Sequence record: PV340851.1
Strand: one strand, 5' to 3'
Length of the DNA stretch: 64,000 nt
Both the position numbers and the translations under genes were made by a program. The notes under the pieces are model-generated. The model saw only the letters and a program-made list of their open reading frames with translations. It was not told where the DNA came from and did not search any database. Positions 37,901 through 53,085 of this stretch are shown piece by piece (position 1 is the first letter of the stretch; every line of letters starts with the position of its first letter).

Positions 37901-40900
37901 TCAACTGGTATCGTTACTTTCACCTTGGCGAGTCATGGATTTGCTAACGGCGACTATATCAAGGTCGATGATGGTTCTCTAACCTACACATGTGCTCTGG
38001 ATGGCAATACTGTTCAGAAGTCTTACCCCCGTGCTGGATATGATTATCCATCTGGTCGCTGGTTGCAGATTTCTGGTGTAACAACCAACCAGTTTAAGAT
38101 CAACGTTGGTCCTTCTTCCTATACAGGCACTCATCTATTCGTCTCTGCTGCTGCAGACGCGATCAAACGTCAAGATGGTACATTCACCCTCAACGTTGGT
38201 ACATCGTCCGATACAAGCGCACATACCTTTGTTAGCGCAACTACGGATGCTGTGAGACATGAACCACAATCTGCTCATACATTCATCTCTGCAACGACAG
38301 ATGCAGTTAAGCATCTTCCACAGTCTGCTCATACATTCGTAAGAGCATCTCAAAATGCAATTGAAGTATATCCCCCAGGATCTGCTCCTCTGTGTGCTAG
38401 CGTCGCTTCTACGATTGCTACATCGATGAATCTGTTTGAATCTATCCTTGATGGTACTATTCAAGCAGGTGCAACTACCGTAACATATGGTACTTTGTAT
38501 GATACGTCGAATGTTATCACATATCCTGATTCTTACATCACTGATCAAAATGATGTAAGGATGGCAATCCGTGCTGATTACGATGACTATCCAATTATTG
38601 AGGCATCTCCATATACACAGAACGCATCTGTTATCTCCTTCCTAGGTGGTGGCGGTGCTGAAGTTGATGGTGACAAAGTTAAGCAACCTAACTGTCCTTT
38701 CCCTGGTCTTGAGATCGACGGAACGGCATCCTTCCCCAACCAGGGTAAGTCGATGGTTGCTGCAGCATTCACGATCGTCTCCTTCGGTGGTACAGGTTAC
38801 AAGATCGTCAACGATGGTTACACCCAGTTGGTTTCGGTCTTCGTTATCTTCTGTGCTGACGGTGTACTTTCTGAGTCTGGTGGTTATGCATCTATCACCA
38901 ACTCTGCTACCAACTTCGGTATCTATGCTCTGAGAGCAACTGGTTTCCGCAGAGATCCATACGTCTTTGACGCAGGTTACTTTGCTGGTTCTACATACGT
39001 TCGTGCAACAATCACTAACGTATCTCAGACACCTACAGGTAGAACAATCTTTACGATTGAGAACCTAGGTCGTGAACCACTGGAGCACTACATCCTCAAG
39101 ATTGATGGTCATACTAACTCCGATCCTGATACAGAATACTTCATTGATGAAGTTACTCAGGTCGGTGCTGGTCCACCATTTACCGCTACATGTATCTTTG
39201 ATGATGGTTCTGGTGGATCTGTCAGTGTCATTGATGACAGCAATGGACAAGCAGTTACACCTGCAAACCTAGATGGTGCATATGTTGGTCTACATAGACC
39301 TTCTATTGTTAACTCCTCCTCCCACACCTGGGAATTCGCAGGTTCGGGTACTAACTACCTAGCACTACCCGAGAACGGTGGTACTAAGGTTGAAGCAAAC
39401 GAACAGTTCAACGAAAACTACGGTCGTGTATACGTCTCTGGTACTGACGAACTGGGTGACTTCAAGGTTGGTACGTTCGCTAAGATCGAAAACAGAACTG
39501 GTGCTATTACCTTCACGGGTACGGTTACCATCTCGGAAGTTGAATTCTTGAAACTGAAAGGTGGCGACGTTGTTGTCACAGGTTTCGATGACTCTAACAC
39601 ACTGGGTGGTGCTAACTCTAGTAACAGTAAGATCCCAACTCAGAAGGCAGTTAGAGACTTCATCACCAACAACCTTGGTGCATACATCCAGAAGGAATAC
39701 TCAACCAACTCTGTTCCTAGAGCACTGGTCGAACTGACTGATTCTGGTAAGATCTCTCTCGATCAGATCCCTGCTCTGCGTCCTTTCCAGGTCTTTACAA
39801 TTCCCGATCAAGCAGCAAGACTTTCTATCGAAGGCGCACTCGCTGGTGACATCGCGATCCAACAGGACAATAACACTTCCTTCATTCTGAATAACGATAA
39901 CGGTAGTCAGTTCTTGGCATTCACCGTTGATCCAAGTCTGTCGTTCACCCTGAACGATATCTTCGAGGGTAGCGTATCTGGTGGTCAGATTCAGGCAACT
40001 GAGTACAGACAAGGTGTTCTCTATCAGATCAATATCACCGAAGCAGGTAGTGGTTATACACAACCTCCTGTTGTCACCATCTCTGGTGGTTCTCCACAGG
40101 CAGGTGCTGTTGCTGCAGTTGCAACTTGTACTATTGCTAATGGTCAAGTTGTTACGATTACCATCGAGGAACAAAACAGTTATGTTGGTGGTAAAGGTTA
40201 CACCGTTCAACCTGTTATCAACATTGCAGCGCCTCCAGGTGGTGGTACTCAAGCAGAAGCACTGGGTCTCATCGAAAGCAGACTTTATGGTAACATCGTC
40301 AACAACATCAAGATTGTTGATACTGATACATTCCAATCCAGTGATGTTCCTGCTGAGACAATCAATATTACTAGAGCGATTAACACCTCTTCCTCTAACG
40401 CTAATAATTGGGTATCCCTATCCACTACAACTGTTGATGCTAGAGACATTACTGGTGGTCCTATCGCGACTGACCTGCTGTCTACTAACTCCACAGCAGC
40501 AAACTCTAACACCTTCCTGAGAGGTGACCAATCTTATGCACTGGCAGTTCAGTCCCTGAAGGGTCCTGAAGAAAGATACTTTGCAAAACTGAGTGTTCCT
40601 GCTCAGTCTGGTGGTATCACAATGATCTTCGCTAGCAACCAGAACGCACTGAAAGGTCATATTATCAGAAACACTGTCACGGGTGTTCAGGAAGATACAA
40701 TTATTACCTCTGTTATCACAGAGAACAACTTGACTACGATTTCTTTCTCTCAAGAGAAAGCACTCACAGCAACCATTCCTACTGGAACTATTATCGAGTT
40801 CCAGAGACCACCTTCACCAATTAAATTTGACTCTACGTTTACCCAAGGTAACTTCGTTGAGGAAGTCATTATTGCTAACGGTGGTAGTGGATTTACCAAC

Positions 40901-43684
40901 GGTACATACTACAACCAAACTGTAACTGGTGGTAGTGGTACAGGATTCAAGGTAACATACATTGTTGCAAACAACAGCATCACTGAGGTCATTATTACCA
41001 CTGGTGGTGCTGGTTACACAACTGATTTCCAGGTCAACACTGCTCCGACTGAACTTGGTAGTGGTACTGGACTAGACCTCAGATGTAAGATCTCTACCAT
41101 CAACAGACAGTATGCAAACGTTACTGTTGATATCGACAGAGTTGTCTCTGCATCTCTCGACCCTGAGTATGGTACTACTGGTGTTGCTAGATTTGATAAG
41201 AATCAGTTCTTCATCGGTGATGCAGGTGACGGTTCTATCAGACTGAAGACCGCATCTAACAGCATCGACTCTGGTCTTGATGCTGACCTTCTGGATGGCA
41301 AGCAAGGTTCCTTCTACCAGAACGCTGGTAGTTTGTCTGCTGGTACACTGGACTCCGACAGATTGTCTGGTACATACAACATTGACATCTCTGGTCAGTC
41401 CCAGAAATGTATCAGATTGCTCACTGGTACTAACAACCCATCCTCTAACCCATCACCAAACACCTTCTCCGAAGGTATTATTTGTAACACCAAGAACAAC
41501 AATGCTGACCAGCTCCTAGACGGCGGCACCAAGCACATGGTGATGACGCTAAGACCTGGACCTGATGCTACCTTCGGTGGTATCAGACAGTTGGCATTTA
41601 CCGACAACGACAACATGTGGTTGCGTGGTTCTGGTACTGGTGTTACTACATTCGGTACATGGGCACAGATCTGGACATCCGAGAACGATGGTATTGACAC
41701 TGGACTAGATGCTGACAAACTGGATAACAGAGAAGGCACTTGGTATCAGAATGCTCTAAACATCAACTTCGGTACTATCTCTGCTAACAGACTGCCATCC
41801 TTCATGAAGGCATCTGGTTTCAGAAACACACTGAAGGTTAAGACATTCAACGGTGATCCTAAGTACAGAATCTATGTTTCTGGTAAGGTTCTAACTGCGT
41901 TCCCTGCTCCTAACCCATTCACTCCTGGTAACACTGTCAACCTGTACAACGCACAGTCTCAGGCAACAGGTACGATTGAGATCGATAATATCATTACAAA
42001 TGATGATCTAAATGATGACAGAAATGACTACTCGATTCTCATTGGTAGACTGACTAATGGTAACTTCCAGAACGCTGTTACGATTGGTACTGCTGCTCTA
42101 CCTGTTATCTTCCATGACTTTACTATTGAGGATGACAACGTTATCGATATCGTCACGATGGAAAGTGATGGTGGCACCGCTAACATTAAACTTGGTAGAA
42201 AGGACGGTGTAGCATCCAACCCTGGTATCTACTTCAGTTCTTCTCAGTTGGTTGCTAACTACAACTCTTCGATTGTTGCAACTGGTGGTAACGCAACTGA
42301 TGGTTCTGGTACACTGAACGCACAAGTTGCTGATGCTAATGGATTTAGCGTCAATGGCAACATCGTCTGGAACGAAGGTAACGTTCAGTTCAACTCTACT
42401 AACGTCCTGGGTACTGCAGTCATTCGTGACGCTACTGGATCTTTTGAAGCACATCGCATTACATTGGTTGCAGATGTTAACGGCATCGAAGGTGAACTGA
42501 TTGGTAAGGCATCTAAGAACGTACTGAAAGAAGGCGATACCATGACTGGTACGCTGAACATCAGTGGTGCTCAATCTAACTTCTCTGTACAAGGAACCTC
42601 TGGTTTCACAGGTAACGTCGTAATGTCGAATGACCTGACAGTTGCAACTGACGTTCTATTCGTTGATGCTTCTGACGAAGAGGTTGGCATCGGCACCACA
42701 AATCCACTGGACAAACTGTCCGTGATCGGAGGTGCATTTGTTATTAACTCTGGCAATTCTGGTAACAGCATCTCGACACCAAATGCACTAGGCATCACAT
42801 ATGATTCCAGTGCTGCTCGCGGTCACATTATCGTTGATCATCAATCTGCTTCTACATCTCTTGACTTCGAGACCTCTAATAGTGGTACTCTAAGTTCCAA
42901 GATGAGATTGGATAATGTTGGTCATGTCTTCCCATTATCTTCTACACAGGATCTTGGTAAGGATAGCACCAACGAAAGATGGAGAAATCTATACGCGAAG
43001 AACGTATATGCCGACGAGAAACTAACTATTGAAGATGCAGCATCTAATGCTGGTGCTCCTGCATACTTCCTAGGTGCATCTGGTTTCCGTAACTTCCGTC
43101 TTGGTAACCAACTGCTTGCAGATGACACATTTGAAATTACAGCAAGCACTGCAAATGGTGGTCAGGTCTGGGGTTCTACTCCTGCTCTGTTTATCCAAGG
43201 TGCTACAAACAGAATTGCAATAAATACTACTAACTTCAGTGGTACTGATACATCTGGCGCATCTCCAGTTGTTAGAGATTATCAACTGAACATCGAAGGT
43301 GACCTTAACTTCAACGGTCAACTCTTCCAGAACAACGAAGAATTCGTTACTTCTAGATGGACACTGAACAAGACTACCAACAATATCTGGAGAATTTCTA
43401 GAGTTGGTATTAACCAGGCAAACCCAGATTATCAACTGGATGTCAACGGCAGTCTCAATGTTCGTGGTTCTACATTCGTTTCTGGATCTAACACTGACGT
43501 AATAAGTGTTAACGGTGATGTCCAATATGTTGATTCCTACGGCGTCTTCAAGACAAATCGCAACACAGTTAACGAAAACGTTACTATTCCTGCTGCTACA
43601 AACGCAGTAAGCGCAGGTCCTTTGACTATAAATAATGGTGTAACAATTACCATTGCAAACGGTAGCTCCTGGAGTGTCGTATAA
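31979..43684 (+). CDS. Giant tail fibre/tailspike-like protein (3901 aa)
   Basis: Split beta-helix (YVSSQIGNDLNDGRSAVNP...; SPYTQNAS...), about 10 YD..TG..HG..FTC..DG..YPR repeats, DADLLDG/DADKLDN motifs, and a C-terminal NENVTIP...SAGPLTINNGVTITI..GSSWSVV typical of marine phage fibres. Confidence 0.85.
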   Translation: MSFNINSDKEFISGSKPQFIGTTQFSIRAGGGVDEKEVVRALLDSEEKLPRVGINRTGQRVNNINVLTSGSGYTTEPTVTVSPPPDSPTAVQALASAFIFNGRVVSIAINNPGAGYSTAPTVTITGGNGGGCSAVAELDTVDYELDINGAIRTSTSIISDTARILNLDIDNFVTPDLNLRGPNLKTYVNNSGTIWVANTIVQENSYRYFGANVYQALNAGQTGPAAPEHLDGIVLNGEVNFKHIGFRVNDENAFKYGETGEAGIYPRSITPLLGDRSDKIATTEYVLNLATNDVGGRIYVSSQIGNDLNDGRSAVNPVRSVKKAAQLAWATPGVKETIIISGGDYVEDNPISLPPDASVVGDNLRLVIIRPNNPGKHIFKFGDKNYVTGVTYRDKIDANGDAIATWDFAMVFDDKQRIIVDSEVNGDFGVNFPIGHQVFGPDKFRINGFQNNTGLSALVSGLEAVGVNTGARGIISNVIFTETSGNNAYQNGSLDIVITSGSFLEGEGFRYIISGNVGSSVGSSTGTVGINQIAITSDPTPLGLIVSSYIYLDGVSNSQVSTGFYEIIQIDDDNAPTQWELTLAPILNATGWRETESGTINISSASITEGQFDSTKINSIRAEGEVVFEDADFDTSLPIIRMDFSKQGDPSIAQDGFQSDIFGNAEDPGGVILYTSALAGRQNFHDFKEGQEILIEGLPTVSPDLSFMNGRQRIYKVLEDADGRARRFVIPKKVPASLGLNANDNFDPGQFATVKSASRSVTFSLLNSPNKFPLSQPVDRRFQDACTFIRNNRDFIADEVVGRINREFAQDYHSVYEIGGQSSASYTATDATYDPSTGEFEITIPTHGLSVGEGIRIADDSFVFTCAMDGNKTEHALPEAGQYASGKSLPIISTTTNTVTVNVGASGPNEFFTPSNATYDPTLGTLQLIIGAHTLSPGEGVVIDDNSLSFKCAMDGYDSTKTYPRPNIDPFAGRSIPIQSVTADSITLQVGISRENFSLTPTTGTTYDAATGDLVMNVGQHGLGVGRNVVLNDNSFTFTCDIDGNVSQHTYPRPGTDPYAGKSIEITNVGFTEHTPTNVSYNAATGVVEFTINSHGFNNGDYIMVADGSLVFTCDLDGNVAQKAYPRAGYDLPSNRWMEVSIVSGDVFSINVGPSSYTGTHTWISAASNAIKRQDGYLTINVGNAGSAAGSNHTFVAATSGAVKHEPRSNHLFQGATTNAVRHLPQSAHTYVRSTSGGITTGGSSFKIYLGQTEHEHTYVSGGTVTFGGSDYTMTNFEYDALVSGVATVTTTNSIPGLAEDDIVKLADILISCEAGQKVYPSYSSPTSGGNALVSNGDEQCKQDLVHFMNAVIRDLEYGTNHNVIDAANKYIVNEKITYIEDEIVQNMRAIEYARQLLIFAVCNWRTEDRTPGDPIYVPQYSSLPRYFDDTVITATAGTPACANVVSAIDVLSFLWVDVITNNASGTLLDAAYLIMRNADLIADQALIDTKQQYPTLNLSDIMERKCKRDIKIVLEGLAKDLCLGGNSGIVAVAESYFSGTALTAISEAQRQETIYAYQRVQQHAIAAMRNWTGGNVIDLTPSSAQYNSTTGQLTVTFPDPLLPITTNDRIAFKEEALTFNCSFGSGGDHANPRPGDANYGKSQAITGVTSSGGATTVTTNVGDAGAAAGLVHTLTAALTDGTIIIYDPIETTSAIPQYEDWNILIDVNGTASSIQVTPTGATYNPANGVFVVTANGHGASVGDQVAFDAESFVFTCAMDGNKTEHALPGPGQPAYNNLITIDAADANTFTLNVGASGPDVQFTPTGITYDPATGDMVMEIGPHSLSVGEGIVIDDNSLTFTCAMDDNQSQKTYPRPGIDPFAGRSMLITSTSATTITVDAGKSGPNKYFTPTNATYNPSTGDMVLTVGQHGLGVGRNVTLANNSFTFTCAADGNATQHTYPRSGQDPFADNKSIAITAVGTTSHTPTNAAYDASTGIVTFTLASHGFANGDYIKVDDGSLTYTCALDGNTVQKSYPRAGYDYPSGRWLQISGVTTNQFKINVGPSSYTGTHLFVSAAADAIKRQDGTFTLNVGTSSDTSAHTFVSATTDAVRHEPQSAHTFISATTDAVKHLPQSAHTFVRASQNAIEVYPPGSAPLCASVASTIATSMNLFESILDGTIQAGATTVTYGTLYDTSNVITYPDSYITDQNDVRMAIRADYDDYPIIEASPYTQNASVISFLGGGGAEVDGDKVKQPNCPFPGLEIDGTASFPNQGKSMVAAAFTIVSFGGTGYKIVNDGYTQLVSVFVIFCADGVLSESGGYASITNSATNFGIYALRATGFRRDPYVFDAGYFAGSTYVRATITNVSQTPTGRTIFTIENLGREPLEHYILKIDGHTNSDPDTEYFIDEVTQVGAGPPFTATCIFDDGSGGSVSVIDDSNGQAVTPANLDGAYVGLHRPSIVNSSSHTWEFAGSGTNYLALPENGGTKVEANEQFNENYGRVYVSGTDELGDFKVGTFAKIENRTGAITFTGTVTISEVEFLKLKGGDVVVTGFDDSNTLGGANSSNSKIPTQKAVRDFITNNLGAYIQKEYSTNSVPRALVELTDSGKISLDQIPALRPFQVFTIPDQAARLSIEGALAGDIAIQQDNNTSFILNNDNGSQFLAFTVDPSLSFTLNDIFEGSVSGGQIQATEYRQGVLYQINITEAGSGYTQPPVVTISGGSPQAGAVAAVATCTIANGQVVTITIEEQNSYVGGKGYTVQPVINIAAPPGGGTQAEALGLIESRLYGNIVNNIKIVDTDTFQSSDVPAETINITRAINTSSSNANNWVSLSTTTVDARDITGGPIATDLLSTNSTAANSNTFLRGDQSYALAVQSLKGPEERYFAKLSVPAQSGGITMIFASNQNALKGHIIRNTVTGVQEDTIITSVITENNLTTISFSQEKALTATIPTGTIIEFQRPPSPIKFDSTFTQGNFVEEVIIANGGSGFTNGTYYNQTVTGGSGTGFKVTYIVANNSITEVIITTGGAGYTTDFQVNTAPTELGSGTGLDLRCKISTINRQYANVTVDIDRVVSASLDPEYGTTGVARFDKNQFFIGDAGDGSIRLKTASNSIDSGLDADLLDGKQGSFYQNAGSLSAGTLDSDRLSGTYNIDISGQSQKCIRLLTGTNNPSSNPSPNTFSEGIICNTKNNNADQLLDGGTKHMVMTLRPGPDATFGGIRQLAFTDNDNMWLRGSGTGVTTFGTWAQIWTSENDGIDTGLDADKLDNREGTWYQNALNINFGTISANRLPSFMKASGFRNTLKVKTFNGDPKYRIYVSGKVLTAFPAPNPFTPGNTVNLYNAQSQATGTIEIDNIITNDDLNDDRNDYSILIGRLTNGNFQNAVTIGTAALPVIFHDFTIEDDNVIDIVTMESDGGTANIKLGRKDGVASNPGIYFSSSQLVANYNSSIVATGGNATDGSGTLNAQVADANGFSVNGNIVWNEGNVQFNSTNVLGTAVIRDATGSFEAHRITLVADVNGIEGELIGKASKNVLKEGDTMTGTLNISGAQSNFSVQGTSGFTGNVVMSNDLTVATDVLFVDASDEEVGIGTTNPLDKLSVIGGAFVINSGNSGNSISTPNALGITYDSSAARGHIIVDHQSASTSLDFETSNSGTLSSKMRLDNVGHVFPLSSTQDLGKDSTNERWRNLYAKNVYADEKLTIEDAASNAGAPAYFLGASGFRNFRLGNQLLADDTFEITASTANGGQVWGSTPALFIQGATNRIAINTTNFSGTDTSGASPVVRDYQLNIEGDLNFNGQLFQNNEEFVTSRWTLNKTTNNIWRISRVGINQANPDYQLDVNGSLNVRGSTFVSGSNTDVISVNGDVQYVDSYGVFKTNRNTVNENVTIPAATNAVSAGPLTINNGVTITIANGSSWSVV
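34445..38368 (+). repeat. Duplicated block of nested about 85-aa repeats (copy A about 34445-35767, copy B about 37121-38368)
   Basis: Four repeats followed by four HT[FY]V.A...A[VI] closing strands occur twice; a perfect 41-nt repeat lies at 34559-34599 and 37232-37272. Confidence 0.85.
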
Positions 43685-44434
43685 ATGAGTAGCATATTTG
43701 TCAATACCCTCAAGTCTACGACAGGGAATACTATCCTGATCCCCGCAGGTCATTCCTTGTCACTGGATGGTACTGTCGTAACTAATAATTCTCTAGTTCC
43801 TAACCCAAATGGACAAGACGGGAAGATTCTTAGGTCCGATGGTTCATCACTAGGATGGGGAACCTCTGGTGCTAAGAATATTATTCAGTATACATCATCT
43901 GGAACTTACTTCCCATCTACAGGAACAAGACTTATTCATGTTAGAGTTGTTGGTTGTGGTGGTGGAGGTTCTGGTTATGCAGAATCTGGTGGTTCTGGTG
44001 GATATGCTGAAGGTTTCTTTAGTATGGTCGGAGTATCATCTGTTGCTATTACAGTAGGGAATGGTGGCACTGCCACATATTATTCTGGTGGTGCTGGAAC
44101 TGGTGGTTCGGTTTCCTTTGGTTCGTATATAACATGTAACGGAGGAACTGGTGCAAATAGTGCTCACCAACACTGTGGTGGTCTTGGTGGATCTTCTTCT
44201 GGTGGTACTATTAACCTCTATGGAGGAGGCGGAACTGGTCATGGTTACAATGGTAGAGGAGGTCAAAACTTCTTTGGAGGTTGTGGTACATCAGGTCACC
44301 CACAAGGCGGCGCATATGCAAACAACCATAGATCACACTCTGTTCCAGGAACAGGTGGTGTAAATGGATGGGCAAGAAGAGACCCAGGAAACGTTGGTAT
44401 TGAAGGTCAAGTAGTTATTTGGGAATATAGCTGA
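43685..44434 (+). CDS. Glycine-rich fibre-tip/adhesin-like protein, paralogue 1 (249 aa)
   Basis: MS.I.VN...S..G..I.IP.G N-terminus, VVG.GGGG, TYYSGGAG, HQHCGGL, GHPQ; directly after the fibre gene. Confidence 0.8.
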   Translation: MSSIFVNTLKSTTGNTILIPAGHSLSLDGTVVTNNSLVPNPNGQDGKILRSDGSSLGWGTSGAKNIIQYTSSGTYFPSTGTRLIHVRVVGCGGGGSGYAESGGSGGYAEGFFSMVGVSSVAITVGNGGTATYYSGGAGTGGSVSFGSYITCNGGTGANSAHQHCGGLGGSSSGGTINLYGGGGTGHGYNGRGGQNFFGGCGTSGHPQGGAYANNHRSHSVPGTGGVNGWARRDPGNVGIEGQVVIWEYS

Positions 44435-45207
44435 TGTCAATTTTAAGAGTAAACGAAATCAGATCACAATCTGGTAGTACAATCAGTGTCCCTAGTGGTT
44501 ATGAACTATCTTTGGATGGACTGATCGTTAATTCAAATTCTATTCCACCAGACCCATCTGGTCAGTCAGGTAAATTCTTACAAGCAACTAGCCAGCTTGG
44601 CGGTGGCGGATCTACTAGCTGGGTCAATGTGGGTCCAGATTCTATTAGAGTTTTTACATCAAATACCACATGGACAAAACCAGCTGGTATCACCAAAGTT
44701 CTTGTTAAGGTAGTTGGTGGTGGTGGTGCTGGTTCTGGTGTTGGTGAAAACGGTGGTGCTGGAGGTTATGCAGAAAAACTTATTGATGTCACCAGTGTAA
44801 CCTCAGTAAACGTTAATGTTGGTCAAGGATCTACATCTTCCACATATTATTCTGGTGCTGCTGGCGGTGGTTCAGCATCCTCATTCGGAAATTACATTAC
44901 TTGCACTGGGGGCAACGGCGGAAATCAAAGTCACCAGCATTGTGGTGGACTTCCTGGTAGTGGTTCTGGTGGCGACTTTAATATGTACGGCGGTGGAGGT
45001 TCTGGTCACATGTATTGGTCTGGTCCTCCAGGTGGCGGTTCTTATTGGGGCGGAGCAGGTGCTACAGGTCACCCACAAGGTGGTGACTATGCTCACCAAC
45101 ATAGTTCACATGCTCCTCCAGGAGCAGGCGGTCCCGCTGGATACCATACTTCCAGACTTGGGGCAAATGGTAGAGATGGTATGGTTGTAATTTACGAATT
45201 TAGATAA
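44434..45207 (+). CDS. Glycine-rich fibre-tip/adhesin-like protein, paralogue 2 (257 aa)
   Basis: Same motif set as paralogue 1; TGATG overlap. Confidence 0.8.
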   Translation: MSILRVNEIRSQSGSTISVPSGYELSLDGLIVNSNSIPPDPSGQSGKFLQATSQLGGGGSTSWVNVGPDSIRVFTSNTTWTKPAGITKVLVKVVGGGGAGSGVGENGGAGGYAEKLIDVTSVTSVNVNVGQGSTSSTYYSGAAGGGSASSFGNYITCTGGNGGNQSHQHCGGLPGSGSGGDFNMYGGGGSGHMYWSGPPGGGSYWGGAGATGHPQGGDYAHQHSSHAPPGAGGPAGYHTSRLGANGRDGMVVIYEFR

Positions 45208-45975
45208 ATGTCAACACTCAATGTAAACAGAATCGAGTCTTCTGATGGTACTAGTATTCTAATTCCAGCTGGATATTCTATCAGTGTTGATGGCACTGTG
45301 ATGAATAAAGATACTCTACCCCCAAGTCCATCTGGACATGAGGGTGAGTTTTTGTACAGTGATGGAACATCTTTGTCTTGGTCTGTTGCTGGTCCTAAGA
45401 GTATGCAGCAGTTTTCAGGAAGTGGCACCTGGATTAAACCAGCTGGCATCACTAAAGTTCTTGTAATGGTACAAGGAGGTGGTGGTGCTGGTTCTGGTCA
45501 TGCTGAATCTGGTGGTGCTGGAGGATATTCAGAAAAACTCATTGATGTCACCAGTGTATCTTCTGTTCAAGTAACTGTCGGTAATGGTTCTACATCTTGG
45601 ACATATTATTCTGGTGGTGCAGGTGACGGAGGAACTACATCGTTTGGTAGTTTCTGTTCTGCAAGTGGTGGTAAAGGTGCAAACACTACACACCAGCATT
45701 GTGGTGGACTTCCAGGTGTAGGATCTGGCGGAGATATAAATATCTATGGTGGTGGCGGCACAGGTCATATGTCATGGGCATGTGCGAAAGGTGGTAGTTC
45801 TTTCTTTGGTGGTGCTGGTGTATCTGGTCACCCACAAAACCAATCTAACCACATTCAGAACAATGACGACAAAGCAGGTTATGGTGCTGGCGGAACGGGT
45901 GGATATACTACATATCAAAACTCTAACGCTGGTAGAGGTAAAGGTGGCGTCGTAATTGTCTACGAATATACTTGA
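45208..45975 (+). CDS. Glycine-rich fibre-tip/adhesin-like protein, paralogue 3 (255 aa)
   Basis: Same motif set; shares a 23-nt identical tract with paralogue 2 (44932-44954 and 45691-45713). Confidence 0.8.
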   Translation: MSTLNVNRIESSDGTSILIPAGYSISVDGTVMNKDTLPPSPSGHEGEFLYSDGTSLSWSVAGPKSMQQFSGSGTWIKPAGITKVLVMVQGGGGAGSGHAESGGAGGYSEKLIDVTSVSSVQVTVGNGSTSWTYYSGGAGDGGTTSFGSFCSASGGKGANTTHQHCGGLPGVGSGGDINIYGGGGTGHMSWACAKGGSSFFGGAGVSGHPQNQSNHIQNNDDKAGYGAGGTGGYTTYQNSNAGRGKGGVVIVYEYT

Positions 45976-45981
45976 TAAATA
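45974..45981 (+). promoter_or_regulatory. Late promoter (GATAAATA) heading the halogenase/oxygenase unit
   Basis: Overlaps the paralogue-3 stop, 25 nt before ORF 46006. Confidence 0.75.
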
Positions 45982-46005
45982 ATAACACAGGAATTCACGA
46001 ACACA

Positions 46006-46476
46006 ATGAAAAGCGTACTAATTGACATTAGAGGTCATATCACTGACATTGTAGAACCAGGCGAAGAATTCGCTGTCTATAATGGTCCAGATGCACAATG
46101 CAAATGGGTGACTTGTCACGTTGATGAAGTTCAATCCAATTGGATACTGAGTCAAAAGACTTGGGTGGCACCTGATAAGCGTTACGAAAACGGTCAGGAC
46201 ATCAAACGTCAGATTGCATATGGTGAGATCGGAGAGCAATTGGATATGCTCTACAAAGATCAACTTAATGGCACCACAAATTGGCGCGATCATATTACTA
46301 ATGTGAAGACAACTATCGAGTCTTCTTCTACATGGGAAGCAAATCCTGCAAACAAAGAAGGTAAAACAAAGATCGTTCTACATACTGATACCAACCCTTC
46401 ATGGTTGCATCTTCCCGAGGGAGAAAATATTATCGAAAATATTCCAACTGGTATCGTATACGCGACTGAAGAATAA
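46006..46476 (+). CDS. Tail-fibre-associated protein (156 aa), possible assembly chaperone
   Basis: AYG.IGEQLDMLYKD...GT..W..HI..VK motif is common in proteins encoded next to marine phage fibres. Confidence 0.65.
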   Translation: MKSVLIDIRGHITDIVEPGEEFAVYNGPDAQCKWVTCHVDEVQSNWILSQKTWVAPDKRYENGQDIKRQIAYGEIGEQLDMLYKDQLNGTTNWRDHITNVKTTIESSSTWEANPANKEGKTKIVLHTDTNPSWLHLPEGENIIENIPTGIVYATEE

Positions 46477-46481
46477 TTGTT

Positions 46482-48086
46482 ATGAAAGTAAATTCGGTAT
46501 GCATCGTCGGGGGTGGATCCTCGGGGTGGATGACTGCTGCCTTATTGGCATACAATCTACCTGATCTGAAAATTACAGTAGTTGAACCCAAAGATATTCC
46601 AACAGTTGGTGTTGGAGAATCTACTCTTGGTCATATCAATAGATACTTAGATTGTATTGGTCTTACAGGCAGAGATGCTGAGTGGATGCCAGAGTGTGAT
46701 GCAACTTATAAAGTTTCTATTCAATTTACAGATTTTAAACACAAGGGACATCGTTTCCAGTATCCATTTGGTCAGATAGATTTTACTGACAATGCAGGTA
46801 ATGATGATTGGGATTATCTATCAAATATTTACAATGATGTAAGGTTTGATGAATTCAATAATCCAATCACATTTCTAGCAGATAATAATAGAATGACTGA
46901 TAACAATCAGGTCATTAGAAATTTTAATTTTGTAAAAGATACAGCATATCATTTTGATGCTACCAAGTTTGGCAATTATCTAAAGGAAACTATTTGTATT
47001 CCTAAAGGTGTAAAGGTTGTTAGAGATAGCGTTGTCAATGTCTTTCGCAAGACAGACGGCACCGAGAGAGTTGATTTCTTACAACTAGAGAATTCTCCAA
47101 TGCTAAAGATCGAAGCAGATCTTTTTGTTGATTGCACAGGATTTAAGTCTCTTCTCCTAGAGGAAGAGATGGGTTCTAAGTTTATTAGTTTTAATGATGT
47201 ACTACTAAATGATACTGCTCTAGCTGCACGCATTCCATTTGTAGACAAAGAGAAAGAAGTACATAACACAACAGATTGTCATGCACTATTGAATGGTTGG
47301 GTTTGGAACATTCCTCTGTGGTCCAGAATTGGAACAGGATACTGTTATTCTAGCAAGTTTACTACAGACGAAAGAGCAGAGGGAGAGTTCCGAAGACATC
47401 TAGCAAAGTCAGATCCTAAACGTGCAGAAGAAGCAGAGTTCTTTAAGATTAATATTAGACATGGCAAACGTGAGAAAGCATGGGTCAAGAATGTTGTTGG
47501 TATTGGATTGTCGTATGGATTCCTAGAACCATTGGAGTCTACTGGTCTCCTAACTACACATGAAAATGCGCTGAGACTATTAGGAACTTTAGAGAAAAGA
47601 AATGGTCTTGTAAAGAAACCTGATATTGATGGATACAATCTGGCAGTAGATCAAGATCTAGAAAGCATGAAAGGATTTGTTGCTATGCACTACTTCCTTT
47701 CCGAAAGAAAGGACTCACCTTATTGGAGATATCTAACAGAAGAAATTGACTTTCCTGAAGTCATGGACTATATTGTCAGAAGTCCTAGACTCTATCAAGA
47801 ATACGTTTTCTCTACTTCTGCTTCTAATAGTTGGGGTAGTTTAGATGGTCTTCTCTATATCGCTGCAGGCATGGGTTGTCGTCCTCTAGGGAAGACAGAA
47901 TGCAACTATAGAATCAGAAGTGGTACAGTCCAAAAAGGAGCTCTTAGAGAATCTTATCTGAAGCATATACGCTATAAAGATCAAGTTCTTAAGAAGTTAC
48001 AAAGCATGCCTACAACCTATGAATATTTGAGAGATCATGTTTATTTTCCAAAGAAAAAAACAAATTCGCTTTCACTCAATGAGTAG
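46482..48086 (+). CDS. Flavin-dependent (tryptophan-halogenase family, PrnA-like) halogenase
   Basis: GGGSSGW (GxGxxG), VGVGEST, CDATYK (catalytic Lys equivalent), WVWNIP (WxWxIP) and FLEPLESTG motifs. Confidence 0.93.
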   Translation: MKVNSVCIVGGGSSGWMTAALLAYNLPDLKITVVEPKDIPTVGVGESTLGHINRYLDCIGLTGRDAEWMPECDATYKVSIQFTDFKHKGHRFQYPFGQIDFTDNAGNDDWDYLSNIYNDVRFDEFNNPITFLADNNRMTDNNQVIRNFNFVKDTAYHFDATKFGNYLKETICIPKGVKVVRDSVVNVFRKTDGTERVDFLQLENSPMLKIEADLFVDCTGFKSLLLEEEMGSKFISFNDVLLNDTALAARIPFVDKEKEVHNTTDCHALLNGWVWNIPLWSRIGTGYCYSSKFTTDERAEGEFRRHLAKSDPKRAEEAEFFKINIRHGKREKAWVKNVVGIGLSYGFLEPLESTGLLTTHENALRLLGTLEKRNGLVKKPDIDGYNLAVDQDLESMKGFVAMHYFLSERKDSPYWRYLTEEIDFPEVMDYIVRSPRLYQEYVFSTSASNSWGSLDGLLYIAAGMGCRPLGKTECNYRIRSGTVQKGALRESYLKHIRYKDQVLKKLQSMPTTYEYLRDHVYFPKKKTNSLSLNE

Positions 48087-48807
48087 TGGGACGAATACAT
48101 TATACCCCATTATACATTCATCCAAGTTAAACAGAGACTGGATTACAGAGGAGAAGCAGGATTATAAAAGTAGATGTCCTTTTAATTTTAAAGGTCCTAC
48201 TGCACATAGCATTAATAAATGTCCTGCTATTCATAGCATTATGAATCAGGGATATATTATTAGAGCACCTGGAGATATTGCTGTTACACGAAGAGGTAAT
48301 AAGTTAGATGTCTATGGACCAGACATTGTACAGCATATTCCTACAGTTGTCACACATGGACAAGAAGTATCAAAATGGTTACTAGACAGTGCCAAAGACA
48401 ATACATGCGAAGAGATAATCAAAATCAATACACCCTGGCGTTGTACTACAAATGATCCTGATCTTATCTTCTTAGTTGTAAAAGTTCCTTTTGTGAATGA
48501 GACTAGATTCTCTGCTGTGATGGGAGTAATGGATCCCAGAATTGCATTTGAAATTAATGTCCAGTTGTTCTGGCATGAAGAAGATGGTAAAGATGAATTG
48601 ATTAAGGCAGGCACTCCTTTGTGTATGTACATTCCAATGAATCGTAAGTATCTAGGAACTTCATTTGTCTGTGAAGATCCTACCGAAAAAGATTGGGAAG
48701 TAGAAAAAGAAATGGCATATTCATATTCATCTGTTAATGAATCATCTACAACTTTAACGGAGAGAGTATCAAAAGTTGCTAAAATTTTGAGAAAATATTA
48801 TGGTTGA
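48037..48807 (+). CDS. Hypothetical protein (256 aa), DUF6065-like
   Basis: KCP..H..M..GYII.AP.DI, IKINTPW and IKAGTPL pattern; overlaps the halogenase end by 50 nt. Confidence 0.65.
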   Translation: MFIFQRKKQIRFHSMSSGTNTLYPIIHSSKLNRDWITEEKQDYKSRCPFNFKGPTAHSINKCPAIHSIMNQGYIIRAPGDIAVTRRGNKLDVYGPDIVQHIPTVVTHGQEVSKWLLDSAKDNTCEEIIKINTPWRCTTNDPDLIFLVVKVPFVNETRFSAVMGVMDPRIAFEINVQLFWHEEDGKDELIKAGTPLCMYIPMNRKYLGTSFVCEDPTEKDWEVEKEMAYSYSSVNESSTTLTERVSKVAKILRKYYG

Positions 48808-49387
48808 TTTGTTTGCTATATCACTATACAAGGGACACATTGATCTACCAGATAATACTTTGTATGATGATCTCAAAAAGCATTTAGAAGATACTACCAA
48901 AAACTATTGGACAGGCGAATCAGGTTGGAGCACTGGTGAAAAAGATTTAGAACTTTGGAATCATGTAAATCTAAACTGTATCTTTGAGGAGATGATGCCT
49001 CAAGTATATACTTACTGGGAAAGTTTAGACTATATTCCTGCTCATATTCATCTAAGATCTTGCTGGGCAAACTTACACAACTCAAATGATTCTTCAGAAG
49101 AACATTCCCATTGTGATGGTTACCAAGGATCAAACATACTTTCTGGTGTGTACTATCTTAGAAAACCTCCTGGTGCGAATATAAGTTTCATTAACCCAAT
49201 GGAATATATGTTACGAATGACACCATATAATACCATGGCGGGCATTAAATCTATGTCCACCGAAGTTGAGTGTATCGAAGGAGACTTTTTGTTGTGGCCG
49301 TCTTGGTTGAAACATAGAGTAGATCCTACTTCTTATGAAGGTGAGCGTATTGCTATTTCTTTTAACATGAGCGGAGTGCCAAAATGA
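48800..49387 (+). CDS. Putative 2OG-Fe(II) oxygenase, TIGR02466-like
   Basis: WAN..N..D....HSH...LSGVYYL..P, EGD.LLWPSWLKH.V and RIAISFN motifs. Confidence 0.88.
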   Translation: MVDLFAISLYKGHIDLPDNTLYDDLKKHLEDTTKNYWTGESGWSTGEKDLELWNHVNLNCIFEEMMPQVYTYWESLDYIPAHIHLRSCWANLHNSNDSSEEHSHCDGYQGSNILSGVYYLRKPPGANISFINPMEYMLRMTPYNTMAGIKSMSTEVECIEGDFLLWPSWLKHRVDPTSYEGERIAISFNMSGVPK

Positions 49388-50136
49388 TTTTCTTAAAACT
49401 AGATCCTAGTTCGGTAGACTTTCCAAAACTAATCAAAACAAATAAACTTGAATACGAAGAGGTTAAGGTAACAGATGGTATTTCATATTTCAACGTCTAC
49501 AACATCTTTGAGGGTGATGGGTTCGATCGATTCCAAAACTTTGTTCAATCTAATCCTATCTGGAGGATGAACAATGAACCAGACCTAACAGACATGAATC
49601 CGTTTTCCACAATTCATTTACCTACGTGGGCAACAGAAGAATTGTTTGCTATGGTTTCGGAACTATATCTCAGAACAGCAACACATCTCCCCCGACATAC
49701 AATCAATAACAATGATTGGGGGAACATCTATTTTAAGGAAGAGTGCAGACCTATCAAGAAATGGAGACTGCCTCACATTGATTATGTAAGAGGTCTTGCT
49801 GCCAACATGTGGTTTACTGATCACGCACCAGGAGACTCTGGAACAGTCCTGTGGAAGTATGTTGGTGGTGAGATACAGAATGGTGTGTTTGAATATCAGG
49901 GCAATCCAGAGCATCCTCTGTATGATGAATGGCATGCTATGGGTCCTACAGATAGAGAGACTCACTTTACTAATTTCACAGAAGAAGAGGGCAGATACTG
50001 GGGGTTTGAATCCATTGGTTTTGTGCCATCTAAATATAAGTGTATGACATGCTATCCTGCAGACGTACCCCATACACCATACATTGACGACGAGATTACT
50101 CTACGTTGGTCTCATACATTCTGTGCTTTTGAATGA
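49384..50136 (+). CDS. Putative Fe(II)/2OG oxygenase, DUF6445-like
   Basis: LPHID (HxD), strand ANMWFT, GT.LW.Y, distal Y...VPH.P. Confidence 0.65.
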   Translation: MIFLKLDPSSVDFPKLIKTNKLEYEEVKVTDGISYFNVYNIFEGDGFDRFQNFVQSNPIWRMNNEPDLTDMNPFSTIHLPTWATEELFAMVSELYLRTATHLPRHTINNNDWGNIYFKEECRPIKKWRLPHIDYVRGLAANMWFTDHAPGDSGTVLWKYVGGEIQNGVFEYQGNPEHPLYDEWHAMGPTDRETHFTNFTEEEGRYWGFESIGFVPSKYKCMTCYPADVPHTPYIDDEITLRWSHTFCAFE

Positions 50137-50720
50137 ACTTAGAACATATTTTTCCAACACCCATATGGTCTTTTGAATATACTGATACTTGTGAGGAGTT
50201 GATCAAGTATATTCAGTATTGCAGAAAGAAATCTGAGGGTAGAATAGTATCTAATAAAGGTGGATGGCAGTCTGAAGATTGTCAAGCATCTGAACTGCCA
50301 AGTTGTTTTGATAATCTACAGAAAAACATACTTAGTGCGGCAAGAGGATGTGTAGATGAATTTGGATCTACTTTGGATCCATGGATAGATAATGTTTGGT
50401 TTAACATTAACTCCAGAGGAAATTCTAATAGACCTCATTTACATGCTGGTGCATTTTTGTCTGGTGTATTTTGGTTACAAGCAGAACCTGGATCTGGTAA
50501 TCTAGTTTTCAGTAGAAATCCACATGAAGATTATGCTATTCATGCACATCTAGGAAACCCAGAGATGACTAGACTAGCAGCTTCTGGGTGGGAGTATTCA
50601 CCTAAACCAGGCATGTGTATTCTTTTTCCAGGGTGGACAATGCATCGAGTAGACGATAACGAAACTGATAGCGAACGAATTTCTTTAGCATTTAATATTA
50701 AAGTCAATGAAAATTTTTGA
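50133..50720 (+). CDS. Putative 2OG-Fe(II) oxygenase, TIGR02466-like
   Basis: SNKGGWQS, WFNIN..G.SN.PHLH....LSGVFWL, FPGW.MH.V and RISLAFN motifs. Confidence 0.9.
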   Translation: MNLEHIFPTPIWSFEYTDTCEELIKYIQYCRKKSEGRIVSNKGGWQSEDCQASELPSCFDNLQKNILSAARGCVDEFGSTLDPWIDNVWFNINSRGNSNRPHLHAGAFLSGVFWLQAEPGSGNLVFSRNPHEDYAIHAHLGNPEMTRLAASGWEYSPKPGMCILFPGWTMHRVDDNETDSERISLAFNIKVNENF

Positions 50721-51294
50721 AAATTTTCTGCCACAAAAGGCAGCAGATGATATTGAAAATACGATGAAAGGGACTGGATTCCCTTGGTATTATATTCCCG
50801 ATGTAACTAGAGAAAAATTTGATTCTTCTGCGTATGCACAACCTGGGTTTCATCATACACCGTTTATGAATTACCAACCCAAGTCTCCTTTCTTTGATTA
50901 CTTTAAACTACTAGCATGTGCTGTTGAAGATGCTATTGAATGGGATGATCCTCTACATCTGTTTAGAATTAGAGCAGGTCTTAATGTAGCAAATGCTCCA
51001 TCTAATAAGCGTTTCAGTCAAGACTATAATTTTCCACATGTAGATCAAAATGCTGACATTGTTAAATGTCAAACGTTTACATGTTTATACTATGTAAATG
51101 ATTCTGATGGCGATACTCATATCTTTAATGAAGATAAAGAGAGTGAAAAATATACTATTAAACATCAGGTGTCACCAATTAAGAATAGAATGATGTACTT
51201 TGATGGTAAGCAATACCATGCAAGTTCATCTCCTATTGCTAGTGACGTTCGTATTGCACTGACATTTAATTTCCATGCAGAAAGAATTTTTTGA
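50707..51294 (+). CDS. 2OG-Fe(II) oxygenase (prolyl-hydroxylase-like)
   Basis: PHVD, TCLYYVNDSDGDT, P.KNR..YFDG..YHASS.P and RIALTFN motifs. Confidence 0.88.
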   Translation: MKIFENFLPQKAADDIENTMKGTGFPWYYIPDVTREKFDSSAYAQPGFHHTPFMNYQPKSPFFDYFKLLACAVEDAIEWDDPLHLFRIRAGLNVANAPSNKRFSQDYNFPHVDQNADIVKCQTFTCLYYVNDSDGDTHIFNEDKESEKYTIKHQVSPIKNRMMYFDGKQYHASSSPIASDVRIALTFNFHAERIF

Positions 51295-51970
51295 ATTGAA
51301 GAGGGAGTTAAAATTAAACGACGACCATAGAGTCTGTCGTAATTTCTTACCTGATCCCAAGACTTATCTGAATTGGGGTGATGTAGACTATGCTCTAAAC
51401 ACAGGCAAGTATTATACTGACATTATTCTAGATGGAAGTCATTTAGATGTAGATGTGTTCAATTACTTCTGGCATGATCATCGCAATCAAGATAAAAAAA
51501 GATTGTTTGATATGATCAATGAAGGTCATACATTTGCTATGACATGTTTCTCCCAGTATAACAAAAAAATTTCTAATCTTGTATCAGACATAGAACAAAT
51601 ATTTGCAGTCATGTGTGACGTTCATGTGTATGGAGGAACAGGTGACAAAGGTTCTTTCTATCCACACGTAGACATCCCATCAAATTTTATCTTCCAGATT
51701 GAGGGCACTACTAAATGGAGACTGTATAAGAATAGTGCATGTGATATGTTCATGCAAGAAGAAATCAATAGCACATTTAATCCTAGTGAACTAGAAGTAC
51801 AGCATGAGGTTACATTAGAACCAGGAGACATGTTGTATATTCCTGCTAGAAGATTTCATGCAGCATTTCCAGAAGGTAGAAGATTGTCTCTTAGTGTACC
51901 ATGCAGATCATTGAAATATAATACTGAAGGATCTAGAAAGTTAGATAGAGCATATTATCATGTTGATTAA
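51275..51970 (+). CDS. JmjC/cupin-4-like oxygenase
   Basis: F.PHVD...NFIFQIEG.TKW, LEPGDMLYIPAR.FH.A and RLSLS motifs. Confidence 0.88.
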   Translation: MQKEFFELKRELKLNDDHRVCRNFLPDPKTYLNWGDVDYALNTGKYYTDIILDGSHLDVDVFNYFWHDHRNQDKKRLFDMINEGHTFAMTCFSQYNKKISNLVSDIEQIFAVMCDVHVYGGTGDKGSFYPHVDIPSNFIFQIEGTTKWRLYKNSACDMFMQEEINSTFNPSELEVQHEVTLEPGDMLYIPARRFHAAFPEGRRLSLSVPCRSLKYNTEGSRKLDRAYYHVD

Positions 51971-52553
51971 ACCGTTGGTAATAAAAAACTTTGTGTCTGA
52001 AGAATTGTGCAGCGTAATGGCAACAGAGTTCACAATTATGAGAGACACTATGAAAATCTTGGATGGACCAGGATTCGATGAGATAGAGAATAGTTTTGCA
52101 TGGTATTCTCCTATTTGTTTTGAGACTCTATCAACATATATTAAATCAAAGGTTGAGCAAGTGGTAAACAAACCATTGCATTCTTCCTATTCATATGGTC
52201 GAATATATAATAAAGGAAGCATCCTTACAAAACATACTGATAGAAAGAGTTCCGAACTTACTGTAAGTATATGCTTGAGAAAGGATATTCCATGGGCACT
52301 CAATTGGGAATGGGAAGGTCAGACTCTGGCATTTGACACAGATCCAGGAGATGCTATAATTGGATGTGGTTCCTCAACACCTCACTGGAGAGATCCATAT
52401 GAGGGCGAGGAACAGGTCCAAGCGTTTATGCAATATGTCGTTGCTGGTGGTGACTATGATCACCTAAAATATGACACTAGACCATGTATCGGTTCTCCGT
52501 ATGAACTGGTAAATGACCTTGTTAGAAACGAAGATAAATACTACATGGACTGA
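51960..52553 (+). CDS. 2OG-Fe(II) oxygenase
   Basis: SYSYGRIY.KG..L.KHTDR.SSE..VSI, PGDA....G...PHWR.P and Q.F..YV motifs. Confidence 0.88.
   Translation: MLIKPLVIKNFVSEELCSVMATEFTIMRDTMKILDGPGFDEIENSFAWYSPICFETLSTYIKSKVEQVVNKPLHSSYSYGRIYNKGSILTKHTDRKSSELTVSICLRKDIPWALNWEWEGQTLAFDTDPGDAIIGCGSSTPHWRDPYEGEEQVQAFMQYVVAGGDYDHLKYDTRPCIGSPYELVNDLVRNEDKYYMD
52533..52540 (+). promoter_or_regulatory. Possible late promoter (GATAAATA)
   Basis: 21 nt upstream of the ATG at 52561. Confidence 0.5.
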
Positions 52554-52560
52554 GGTTATC

Positions 52561-52857
52561 ATGACAGAACCATTGAAACAAACCTATCCCGATCCCGTAC
52601 AGGTAAAAGAAAAAGAAGAACTTCTATCTTTCGAGTACGTTTGGGAAAACTTTGTCTCTCAACTCAATGCTAAACGCGCAGAGTTGCAAGAGAAAGAAGA
52701 AGAAATCAACGATCAAATCAATACTATGACACGAATTGATTTGAAAGATTACAACGATCTTAAAATTGCTGTGACCAAACTAGAAGCTGCTCTAGAGGCA
52801 CTGGATCTTATTAGAACTAGAGTCTGTGGAGAAAAATCACTCATCACCTTTGATTAA
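52561..52857 (+). CDS. Coiled-coil hypothetical protein (98 aa)
   Basis: Start at the ATG at 52561 after a GAGG RBS; heptad pattern. Confidence 0.75.
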   Translation: MTEPLKQTYPDPVQVKEKEELLSFEYVWENFVSQLNAKRAELQEKEEEINDQINTMTRIDLKDYNDLKIAVTKLEAALEALDLIRTRVCGEKSLITFD

Positions 52858-52859
52858 TT

Positions 52860-53045
52860 ATGGATACTCAAGAACTCAAAAAGAATTTCGACGAACAGAT
52901 TGCTAATACTGATAAGCAAATTAGAGAACTAGAAGAAAATCTAGTAAAGGCAAAAGAGTACAAACTCAAACTAGAAGGCGGTCTTGAGACCCTAGCACTT
53001 CTTGAACCACCTGCGGAAGAACCTGCCGAGGCACCCGCAGAATGA
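52860..53045 (+). CDS. Coiled-coil hypothetical protein (61 aa)
   Basis: Heptads, KLKLEGGLETL motif and an acidic Pro-rich tail. Confidence 0.8.
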   Translation: MDTQELKKNFDEQIANTDKQIRELEENLVKAKEYKLKLEGGLETLALLEPPAEEPAEAPAE

Positions 53046-53048
53046 CAC

Positions 53049-53085
53049 AAATCCCTGCTTCCTAAATAGAAGTAGGGATTTTTTG
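53049..53085 (+). terminator. Terminator hairpin whose loop is the gp13 late promoter (CTAAATA 53062-53068)
   Basis: AAATCCCTGCTTC-CTAAATA-GAAGTAGGGATTT followed by a T-run. Confidence 0.85.

Follow-up and report, generated by a model that had tools for sequence, protein, structure and literature searches.

Why should a marine cyanophage carry a flavin-dependent halogenase and a run of iron-dependent oxygenases directly behind the genes for its fibre tips? The question is raised by a stretch of 64,000 nt (the window, to which all positions refer) that matches Synechococcus phage Sf-CH3 with 100% identity (PV340851.1; window coordinate + 62000 = record coordinate), a T4-like cyanomyovirus with WH8102 as host and the sponge Petrosia ficiformis as source (PMC12284385). 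At 45974-53085, on the + strand, it contains a tightly packed unit encoding a small protein, a VirX1-type halogenase, a dUTPase-fold protein and six Fe(II)-dependent oxygenases. The Sf-CH3 paper names 2-oxoglutarate (2OG)-Fe(II) oxygenases merely as typical auxiliary genes (PMC12284385). Few unexplained accessory genes of marine cyanophages are as common as those for halogenases and 2OG oxygenases. The block is the Sf-CH3 copy of the Syn9 gp38-gp54-type module, conserved in gene order across many cyanomyoviruses, and it is very probable that a conserved, co-transcribed late enzyme module exists here. The genes and their arrangement have been public since Syn9, and VirX1 has already been characterised; new here are how far and how strictly the genes are linked, the folds assigned to two proteins, and corrected start codons and database labels. 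One set of such genes (VirX1-type halogenase, dUTPase-fold partner and five oxygenase families) is a fixed module inherited with a specific family of tip proteins, and this fixed linkage narrows the question of function to a few descriptive measurements on cultured phages. Tailoring of virion proteins is the leading answer, and is put forward here tentatively.

The unit, whose genes are all on the + strand and are named here by their first position, follows three paralogous Gly-rich fibre-tip-like genes (43685-44434, 44434-45207 and 45208-45975, also +; Pfam Gly_rich_2, PHROG 863). Eight isolate lineages (Sf-CH3/Sf-FP1, S-RIM44, Sf-FR1, Syn9/Syn10, S-CREM1, P-TIM40, S-WAM1 and P-RSM6) share the order fibre, Gly-rich paralogues, small protein, one or two halogenases, oxygenases. 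The dUTPase-fold protein comes right after the halogenase in six of the eight; S-WAM1 is without it, and no match to its gene was found in P-RSM6. In a ninth lineage, S-SZBM1, a tip paralogue and the small protein are encoded within 3 kb of the halogenase. The Syn9 gp38-gp54 region and its counterparts in Syn10, S-RIM44, P-TIM40, S-WAM1, P-RSM6 and S-CREM1 have the same gene order as Sf-CH3, with proteins 30-57% identical. Sf-CH3 differs from the Syn9 type in its combination of one halogenase, three tip paralogues and six oxygenases, and in a run that abuts g13. The downstream neighbour of the module varies, being g13 in some phages and small open reading frames (ORFs) followed by a helicase gene in others, such as Syn9, P-TIM40, S-WAM1 and S-CREM1.

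Uncultivated viruses show the linkage too. The best 80 of 340 IMG/VR viral-contig stretches encoding a relative of the dUTPase-fold protein were compared, 59 of which carry enough upstream sequence to be informative. An adjacent halogenase, the small protein and the tip paralogues are each present in 58 of these 59 loci, and in 58 the order is tip paralogues, small protein, halogenase(s), dUTPase-fold protein, oxygenases. The commonest oxygenase order, shared by 20 loci, is 48800-type, 49384-type, 50133-type, JmjC, 50707-type (twice) and 51960-type. Of 50,697 phage records, 14 encode the dUTPase-fold protein, each time beside a halogenase. The tip paralogues also occur in 14, in each case within 3 kb of a halogenase, a count obtained with a BLAST low-complexity filter that lowers sensitivity for Gly-rich tip proteins. 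The small protein was found in 21 records, 20 of them module carriers, the exception being a partial match in a Methylophilales phage. A phyletic search of 185,579 species genomes gave four loci only, two of them phage-like. Tip paralogues and dUTPase-fold protein are confined to module carriers, as is the small protein apart from that partial match, whereas the oxygenase families and more distant halogenases are also found outside module genomes.

One might regard the unit as a set of unrelated accessory genes in a permissive insertion slot behind the fibre genes, with no common pathway and with a packing that reflects ordinary phage gene economy. Such a slot would agree with the base composition of the enzyme cluster, the most AT-rich portion of its half of the window (GC 0.36-0.38 at 46001-52000, against 0.43-0.46 in the upstream fibre and tip genes), with a content that differs by lineage (3 to about 10 oxygenases, one or two halogenases), and with the frequency of short overlaps elsewhere in the genome. 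This explanation nevertheless appears improbable in view of the single oxygenase order that recurs in 20 or more loci, and of the isolates, which never show the small protein (its one partial match excepted) or the dUTPase-fold protein without the module. An oxygenase run also occupies the post-fibre slot in S-TIM4, which is without the halogenase. In Sf-CH11, a 40%-identical halogenase is flanked by oxygenases among other neighbours, without tip paralogues.

The packing itself is dense. From the halogenase gene to the 51960 gene, seven successive overlaps measure 50, 8, 4, 4, 14, 20 and 11 nt, in agreement with the preliminary description of this DNA, made from the sequence alone, which had reported consecutive overlaps of 4-50 nt. 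The upstream start codons that define these overlaps are backed by homologues. GenBank places the starts of four genes later (46482 at 46530, 48037 at 48079, 51960 at 52017 and 52513 at 52561); for the 48037 and 51960 genes, invariant residues precede the GenBank starts.

The signals that flank the unit resemble those of a late transcription unit. A late-promoter-like motif, GATAAATA, of the NATAAATA class, lies at 45974-45981 (+), where it overlaps the stop codon of the last fibre-tip gene, 25 nt 5' of the ATG at 46006. It conforms to NATAAATA, the cyanomyovirus late-promoter consensus (PMC2984593). As in T4-type late units, this motif stands 20-50 nt 5' of the first gene and its position is conserved: at the equivalent site 5' of the 46006 orthologue in seven related phages, ATAAATA is found in four and CTAAATA in two. 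The late promoter previously proposed at 45974 is borne out as a motif. In the window as a whole, ATAAATA occurs 14 times against 13 expected by chance, with all 14 copies on the coding strand. Of the 11 copies within the annotated part, 8 are found 21-51 nt 5' of annotated starts (binomial P ~1e-8), including those at terL, portal, scaffold and major head protein. The copy at 52534 is 21 nt 5' of the GenBank start of the 52513-52857 gene. In Sf-CH3 the variant CTAAATA stands ahead of g13, the sheath gene and the giant fibre gene.

At its other end the unit is closed by an intrinsic terminator (53049-53085, +), as had been predicted. Its hairpin (53049-53081), with a stem of 13 bp and a T-run behind it, is more stable than shuffled sequence (dG -19.1 kcal/mol, z -4.0) and is kept in 10 of 10 distinct relatives, with covarying, compensatory changes in the stem. 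The loop places CTAAATA, a late-promoter variant, at 53062-53068, 29 nt 5' of the g13 ATG; in relatives it contains GATAAATA some 25-30 nt 5' of that ATG, and is conserved like the stem. To judge from its layout, the element looks like a combined terminator and late promoter serving g13, which starts at 53097. No other strong + strand terminator was found between 43000 and 53049, so that the enzyme genes should also be readable from the fibre promoters. Enzymes and fibre genes are co-oriented and probably co-transcribed, the enzymes forming one conserved unit. The supplements of PMC7238727 give no expression class for the genes of the block, and an Rfam search found no RNA families in the window.

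The first enzyme of the unit, a 534-aa protein (46482-48086), is a flavin-dependent halogenase, as had been surmised, and belongs to the VirX1 type. It matches Pfam PF04820 (E 1.7e-100, 337 bits) and, over its full length (residues 2-522), VirX1 of Syn10 (PDB 6qgm; E 4.7e-147, 494 bits). Both family motifs given in PMC8407142 are present, the dinucleotide-binding GxGxxG as GGGSSG at residue 10 and WxWxIP as WVWNIP at residue 273, as is the aligned active-site lysine region. Since the alignment with VirX1 begins at residue 2 and includes GGGSSG, the true start is 46482 and not 46530, which would cut off the dinucleotide-binding motif. Despite this likeness, the protein is only about 46% identical to the Syn10 copy (tblastn, Syn10 genome), and is nearer to that of S-RIM44 (57%). 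VirX1 forms trimers, and its active site is open and unusually large; its preferred halide is iodide, and it accepts bulky aromatic substrates, among them free aza-indoles and other heterocycles in vitro, and its natural substrate is not established (PMC8407142). A second halogenase match was seen in Sf-CH3 outside the window. Many viral contigs (e.g. L039, L043, L045 and L048) have one or two extra halogenase paralogues on the opposite strand, about 7-9 kb 3' of the dUTPase-fold gene, just past the oxygenase run. More distant paralogues occur among tRNA/hli, psbA or NAD-synthetase genes.

The constant neighbour of the halogenase is less easily named. The 256-aa product of 48037-48807 had been described as DUF6065-like, which holds only through an intermediate. 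The direct match to Pfam DUF6065 (E 0.089, 12.7 bits over 24 residues) falls below the gathering cut-off of 26.6 bits, whereas a 25%-identical relative on a Gemmatimonadales contig reaches E 2e-5 (24.5 bits) and bridges the two. The AlphaFold model (predicted local distance difference test, pLDDT, 89) points elsewhere. All its top Foldseek matches in the PDB are trimeric dUTPases, albeit weak ones (E 4e-4, 10-17% identity; template-modelling (TM) score 0.30-0.39 on the query and 0.5-0.67 on the target); against viral models, uncharacterised phage proteins rank first and viral dUTPases second. The apparent likeness is one of the beta-barrel fold. Unlike the trimeric dUTPases, the protein has about 100 extra residues, including a helical C-terminus, and no sequence match: Pfam and NCBIfam gave no dUTPase family, and a profile search of the PDB gave E 0.67. 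The protein is not an oxygenase, and its fold would be that of a nucleotide-handling superfamily. The earlier statement that no nucleotide-metabolism or small-molecule scaffold genes lie nearby stands for scaffold enzymes, none of which was found in the unit by Pfam, and is doubtful for nucleotide metabolism given the dUTPase-like fold.

These two proteins suggest another purpose for the unit, in which a free heteroaromatic metabolite, perhaps a nucleobase or nucleotide, would be the substrate of the halogenase together with its translationally coupled partner. The oxygenases would oxidise it further, to a product that aids infection, e.g. a modified nucleotide, signal or inhibitor. The dUTPase-like fold, the pairing of its gene with a halogenase in 58 of 59 loci with a 50-nt overlap in Sf-CH3, and the in vitro action of VirX1 on free heterocycles agree with it. 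So do genomic contexts: the Gemmatimonadales relative is encoded between DnaB/primase and SNF2 helicase genes, the halogenase of S-B64 is located in a replication module, and in several unrelated settings a halogenase gene adjoins oxygenase genes. On the other hand, Pfam finds no scaffold-forming enzyme, carrier protein or transporter in the unit, no sequence match ties the partner to a dUTPase family, a late-type promoter and linkage to fibre genes are ill-suited to nucleotide supply for replication, and the closest solved relatives of two of the oxygenases work on proteins. A small-molecule product is accordingly regarded as unlikely.

It is tempting to speculate on a special case, in which halogenase and partner would make a bromo- or iodo-nucleobase from a pyrimidine- or purine-like nucleotide. 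The dUTPase-like fold, the replication context of the distant relative and of the S-B64 halogenase, and the use of aza-indoles by VirX1 are compatible with such a conversion, and the late-type promoter counts against a role in replication. That such a base is made seems very improbable, and equally so that it would be used in phage DNA or as an antimetabolite, as the same proposal would have it; if true, it would give viruses their first pathway for the enzymatic halogenation of nucleotides.

The six genes that follow were held to encode Fe(II)/2OG- or JmjC-type enzymes of at least four subfamilies, each with HxD or HxH and a distal His. Most of this stands. All six products have H-x-D/E or H-x-H plus a distal His, and the metal motifs are 100% conserved in homologues drawn from the 80 viral contigs (n = 23, 42, 52, 101, 41 and 53 in genome order). 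They make up five sequence families, which upholds the minimum of four. Four are recognised by Pfam above cut-off and one by its fold; the assignment of the sixth, 49384, is probable, from its motif and a link to DUF6445. Dependence on 2OG and activity as hydroxylases are putative for all six. No AlkB-type family was found among them by Pfam, and a literature search found no paper characterising a cyanophage 2OG oxygenase.

Two of the six, at 48800-49387 and 50133-50720 (195 aa each), belong to the 2OG-FeII_Oxy_5 / TIGR02466 family (PF13759), with H-x-H...H as invariant residues. Cupins with H-x-H...H are not necessarily users of 2OG. For 50133, a role as a halogenase-type 2OG enzyme, with Gly in place of the acidic ligand, was considered and dropped, as H-x-H...H is invariant and the next position varies freely. 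The product of 50707-51294 (195 aa) has a prolyl-hydroxylase-type domain, 2OG-FeII_Oxy_3 (PF13640). The protein of 49384-50136 (250 aa) is a distant relative of DUF6445 in a small family (44 clusters among 1.84 billion proteins). It has no direct match in Pfam or PDB sequence searches, while three distant members exceed the Pfam cut-off for DUF6445; in Pfam scans of the members of the alignments, weak DUF6445 matches were obtained for 49384 relatives only. H131 and D133 are invariant among 19 relatives, with H230, R241 and S243 nearly so, and in 42 viral-contig homologues H131, D133, H230 and R241 are kept in all 42 and S243 in 41. An Arg about ten residues past the distal His is the usual 2-oxoglutarate anchor, which makes the 49384 protein a probable oxygenase. 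It is the only one of the six in which Arg-x-Ser is invariant after the distal His.

The last oxygenase, of 197 aa (51960-52553), has no match in Pfam, nor does any member of its alignment. M1, H92, D94 and H142 are invariant among 29 relatives. Its AlphaFold model (pLDDT 90.7) gives 635 Foldseek matches at E <= 1e-3, led by the Pseudomonas prolyl hydroxylase PPHD (1.6e-8) and followed by human PHD2 and the PBCV-1 enzyme vCPH (E to 4e-7, TM ~0.6). On this model the protein is an oxygenase with a prolyl-4-hydroxylase-like fold and H92-x-D94...H142. It differs from the prolyl 4-hydroxylases in its low identity (12-17%) and in lacking a match at sequence level, and small-molecule oxygenases (HygX, MysH) score nearly as high. 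No collagen-like or Pro-rich repeat substrate was found nearby. Searches of the PDB with 48037, 49384 and 51960, as single sequences and as profiles, gave nothing usable, and no significant similarity emerged when the profiles of 49384 and 51960 were compared with one another or with that of 50707.

The enzyme encoded at 51275-51970 (231 aa) consists of the catalytic domain alone of a JmjC_2 (cupin) oxygenase (PF08007, E 1.2e-19, 70.6 bits; NO66, E 6.8e-9). Its nearest solved relatives are NO66, MINA53, YxbC and YcfD, and all 41 homologues keep H131-x-D133...H195. Two of the six enzymes, the JmjC protein (NO66/MINA53) and 51960 (PPHD/PHD2/PBCV-1 vCPH), have protein hydroxylases as their closest solved relatives. 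Host proteins of translation or regulation, such as ribosomal proteins and EF-Tu, might be what the oxygenases hydroxylate, late in infection and with the effect of tuning protein synthesis. The kinship of the JmjC protein with the ribosomal oxygenases NO66, MINA53 and YcfD speaks for it, as do the fold of 51960, closest to a Pseudomonas prolyl hydroxylase solved with EF-Tu, and the wide occurrence of this fold family in marine phages with differing fibres. Unlike the ribosomal oxygenases, however, which measure 373-467 aa, the JmjC protein aligns over residues 80-224 only and does not have their C-terminal dimerisation and winged-helix domains, so that its recognition of substrates must differ from that of NO66, MINA53 and YcfD. 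Moreover, six distinct enzymes in fixed order are many for such a purpose, which would also leave the halogenase/dUTPase-fold pair and the strict co-occurrence with tip paralogues unexplained. A host-directed role is judged quite unlikely.

Published ideas on cyanophage oxygenases are of a metabolic or protective kind: turnover of 2OG and nitrogen status, DNA repair, or protection from antibiotics, with functions unstudied (PMC3037559, PMC2984593, PMC9602691). Applied to this unit, they would make its genes metabolic auxiliary genes that consume 2-oxoglutarate, with effects on nitrogen-status signalling or succinate supply, or that serve DNA repair, and their position would be incidental. Such roles have been proposed in cyanophage genome papers (PMC3037559, PMC9146016, PMC9602691), and oxygenase genes are also dispersed near replication and repair genes. 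Yet the intact sites and constant order of five divergent families, retained at 30-40% identity, speak for substrates that are distinct and specific, and against a bulk consumption of 2OG; none of the six is of the AlkB type, and the halogenase would be left unaccounted for. There is accordingly only a small chance that the unit is metabolic in this sense.

Virion proteins are favoured as targets because of the strict co-inheritance with the tip family, the late-type signals and the protein-hydroxylase relatives of two of the enzymes. Two further observations point the same way: in unrelated phages (HTVC008M, HTVC023P, S-TIM4) oxygenases of these families form runs in tail or neck regions, and the roomy active site of VirX1 admits bulky substrates. 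The three tip paralogues of Sf-CH3 are 49-55% identical to one another and match PHROG 863 ('tail fiber assembly') as well as the C-terminal ends of fibre-protein PHROGs. They lie upstream of the module in every case and are co-inherited with it, and His-rich motifs are conserved among them. In their C-terminal halves, poly-Gly blocks are accompanied by conserved motifs containing His and Cys. In the proposed sequence of events, transcription of the unit would be late, starting at its own promoter and also reaching it by read-through from the upstream fibre promoters, and coupled translation would yield the enzymes in fixed proportion, alongside the fibre-tip proteins. The substrates of the enzymes would most likely be macromolecules. 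In the favoured version these would be the co-inherited Gly/His-rich tip proteins, or else further late proteins of the virion, hydroxylated and halogenated before assembly or in its course. Ribosomally synthesised and post-translationally modified peptide (RiPP) clusters with peptide halogenases and hydroxylases are alike in that several tailoring enzymes adjoin the gene for the presumed substrate, although the presumed substrates here are 250-aa structural proteins. The stronger notion that the enzymes work in the manner of a RiPP cluster is not supported, as Pfam searches of the ten proteins found no leader/core precursor, recognition element, peptidase or exporter.

Several observations weigh against the tailoring of virion proteins. 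The covariation that had been expected between the numbers of oxygenases and tip paralogues did not appear (Spearman 0.07, p 0.65). VirX1 has been characterised only on free small aromatic compounds, in vitro (PMC8407142), and the dUTPase-like fold modelled for the constant neighbour of the halogenase, with a distant relative among replication genes, belongs to a partner whose role this explanation leaves out of account. VirX1-like or more distant halogenases are found in replication or auxiliary metabolic gene regions (S-B64, S-PM2, S-MbCM6), and the prolyl-hydroxylase-fold family of 51960 occurs in 152 phage records, including pelagiphages, mostly without tip paralogues. Collagen-type Gly-X-Y repeats were found neither in the tip proteins nor in the 3901-aa fibre. 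The literature holds no reported modification on any cyanophage virion protein, and the virion proteomes consulted, not searched for modifications, found none of these enzymes in particles (PMC9146016); those of S-SZBM1 and S-CREM1 leave modifications unaddressed. Late timing is predicted from motifs, and perfect sigma-70-type promoters are present inside the oxygenase run of Sf-CH3 and several relatives. In Sf-CH3 the site at 52333-52360 (+), within 51960-52553, matches the consensus at 12 of 12 positions (TTGACA, 16 nt, extended -10 TG-n-TATAAT); it lies about 150 nt 5' of the next ATG and is not found in the closest relatives, while others (e.g. L047, L058 and L092) have a perfect TTGACA-N16-18-TATAAT elsewhere within the run. 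Parts of the run may hence also be transcribed early by the host polymerase. Finally, synteny among related phages can come from common descent alone.

What survives of the virion-tailoring proposal is a conserved unit linked to tip genes, with relatives among protein hydroxylases; the expected covariation and the hallmarks of RiPP clusters do not. If virion proteins are indeed hydroxylated or halogenated, this would be a new chemistry of phage particles, with consequences for host recognition in the ocean. If they prove unmodified, the dUTPase-fold partner would point to a small-molecule or nucleotide product.

The remaining genes belong to the structural surroundings. The small protein that opens the unit (46006-46476, 156 aa, PHROG 1787) is the orthologue of Syn9 gp40 and invariably stands between the tip genes and the halogenase; it gave no match in a Pfam scan, and it is fibre-associated by position, its association with the fibre itself being putative. 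Upstream of the tip genes, 31979-43684 encodes the giant structural (fibre) protein of 3901 aa, with CTAAATA 36 nt before its start and no Pfam domain at E <= 1e-3. Downstream of the oxygenases, two small ORFs accompany g13 and the neck genes rather than the enzymes. The first (52513-52857, PHROG 20247; 114 aa from the long start, GenBank start 52561) is found solely in relatives where g13 comes next, and the second (52860-53045, 61 aa, PHROG 580) lies directly 5' of g13 and is conserved even where most of the enzymes are missing. Database entries for the block need correction beyond the truncated start codons: the labels 'minor coat protein' (49384), 'DNA endonuclease V' (50707) and 'ferrochelatase' (51960), inherited via PHROGs and RefSeq, are misleading, all three proteins being oxygenase-type.

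Related genes also appear in other arrangements. Outside the module too, oxygenase runs recur next to tail or neck genes: pelagiphage HTVC008M has four oxygenases just 5' of g13, and podophage HTVC023P has three plus one among its tail genes. On a Lishizhenia metagenome-assembled genome contig (L101, 1533-3669), three tandem paralogues of the dUTPase-fold protein are accompanied by a relative of 51960 on the other strand, with no halogenase. A 352-kb metagenome contig (L011, 8001-16460) encodes a 27%-identical relative of the dUTPase-fold protein near an Mtd_N-like protein of receptor-binding type, together with an Asp/Arg hydroxylase and six overlapping genes for proteins of about 190-275 aa, and likewise lacks a halogenase; the locus resembles a parallel version of the arrangement, set in a far larger virus-like genome.

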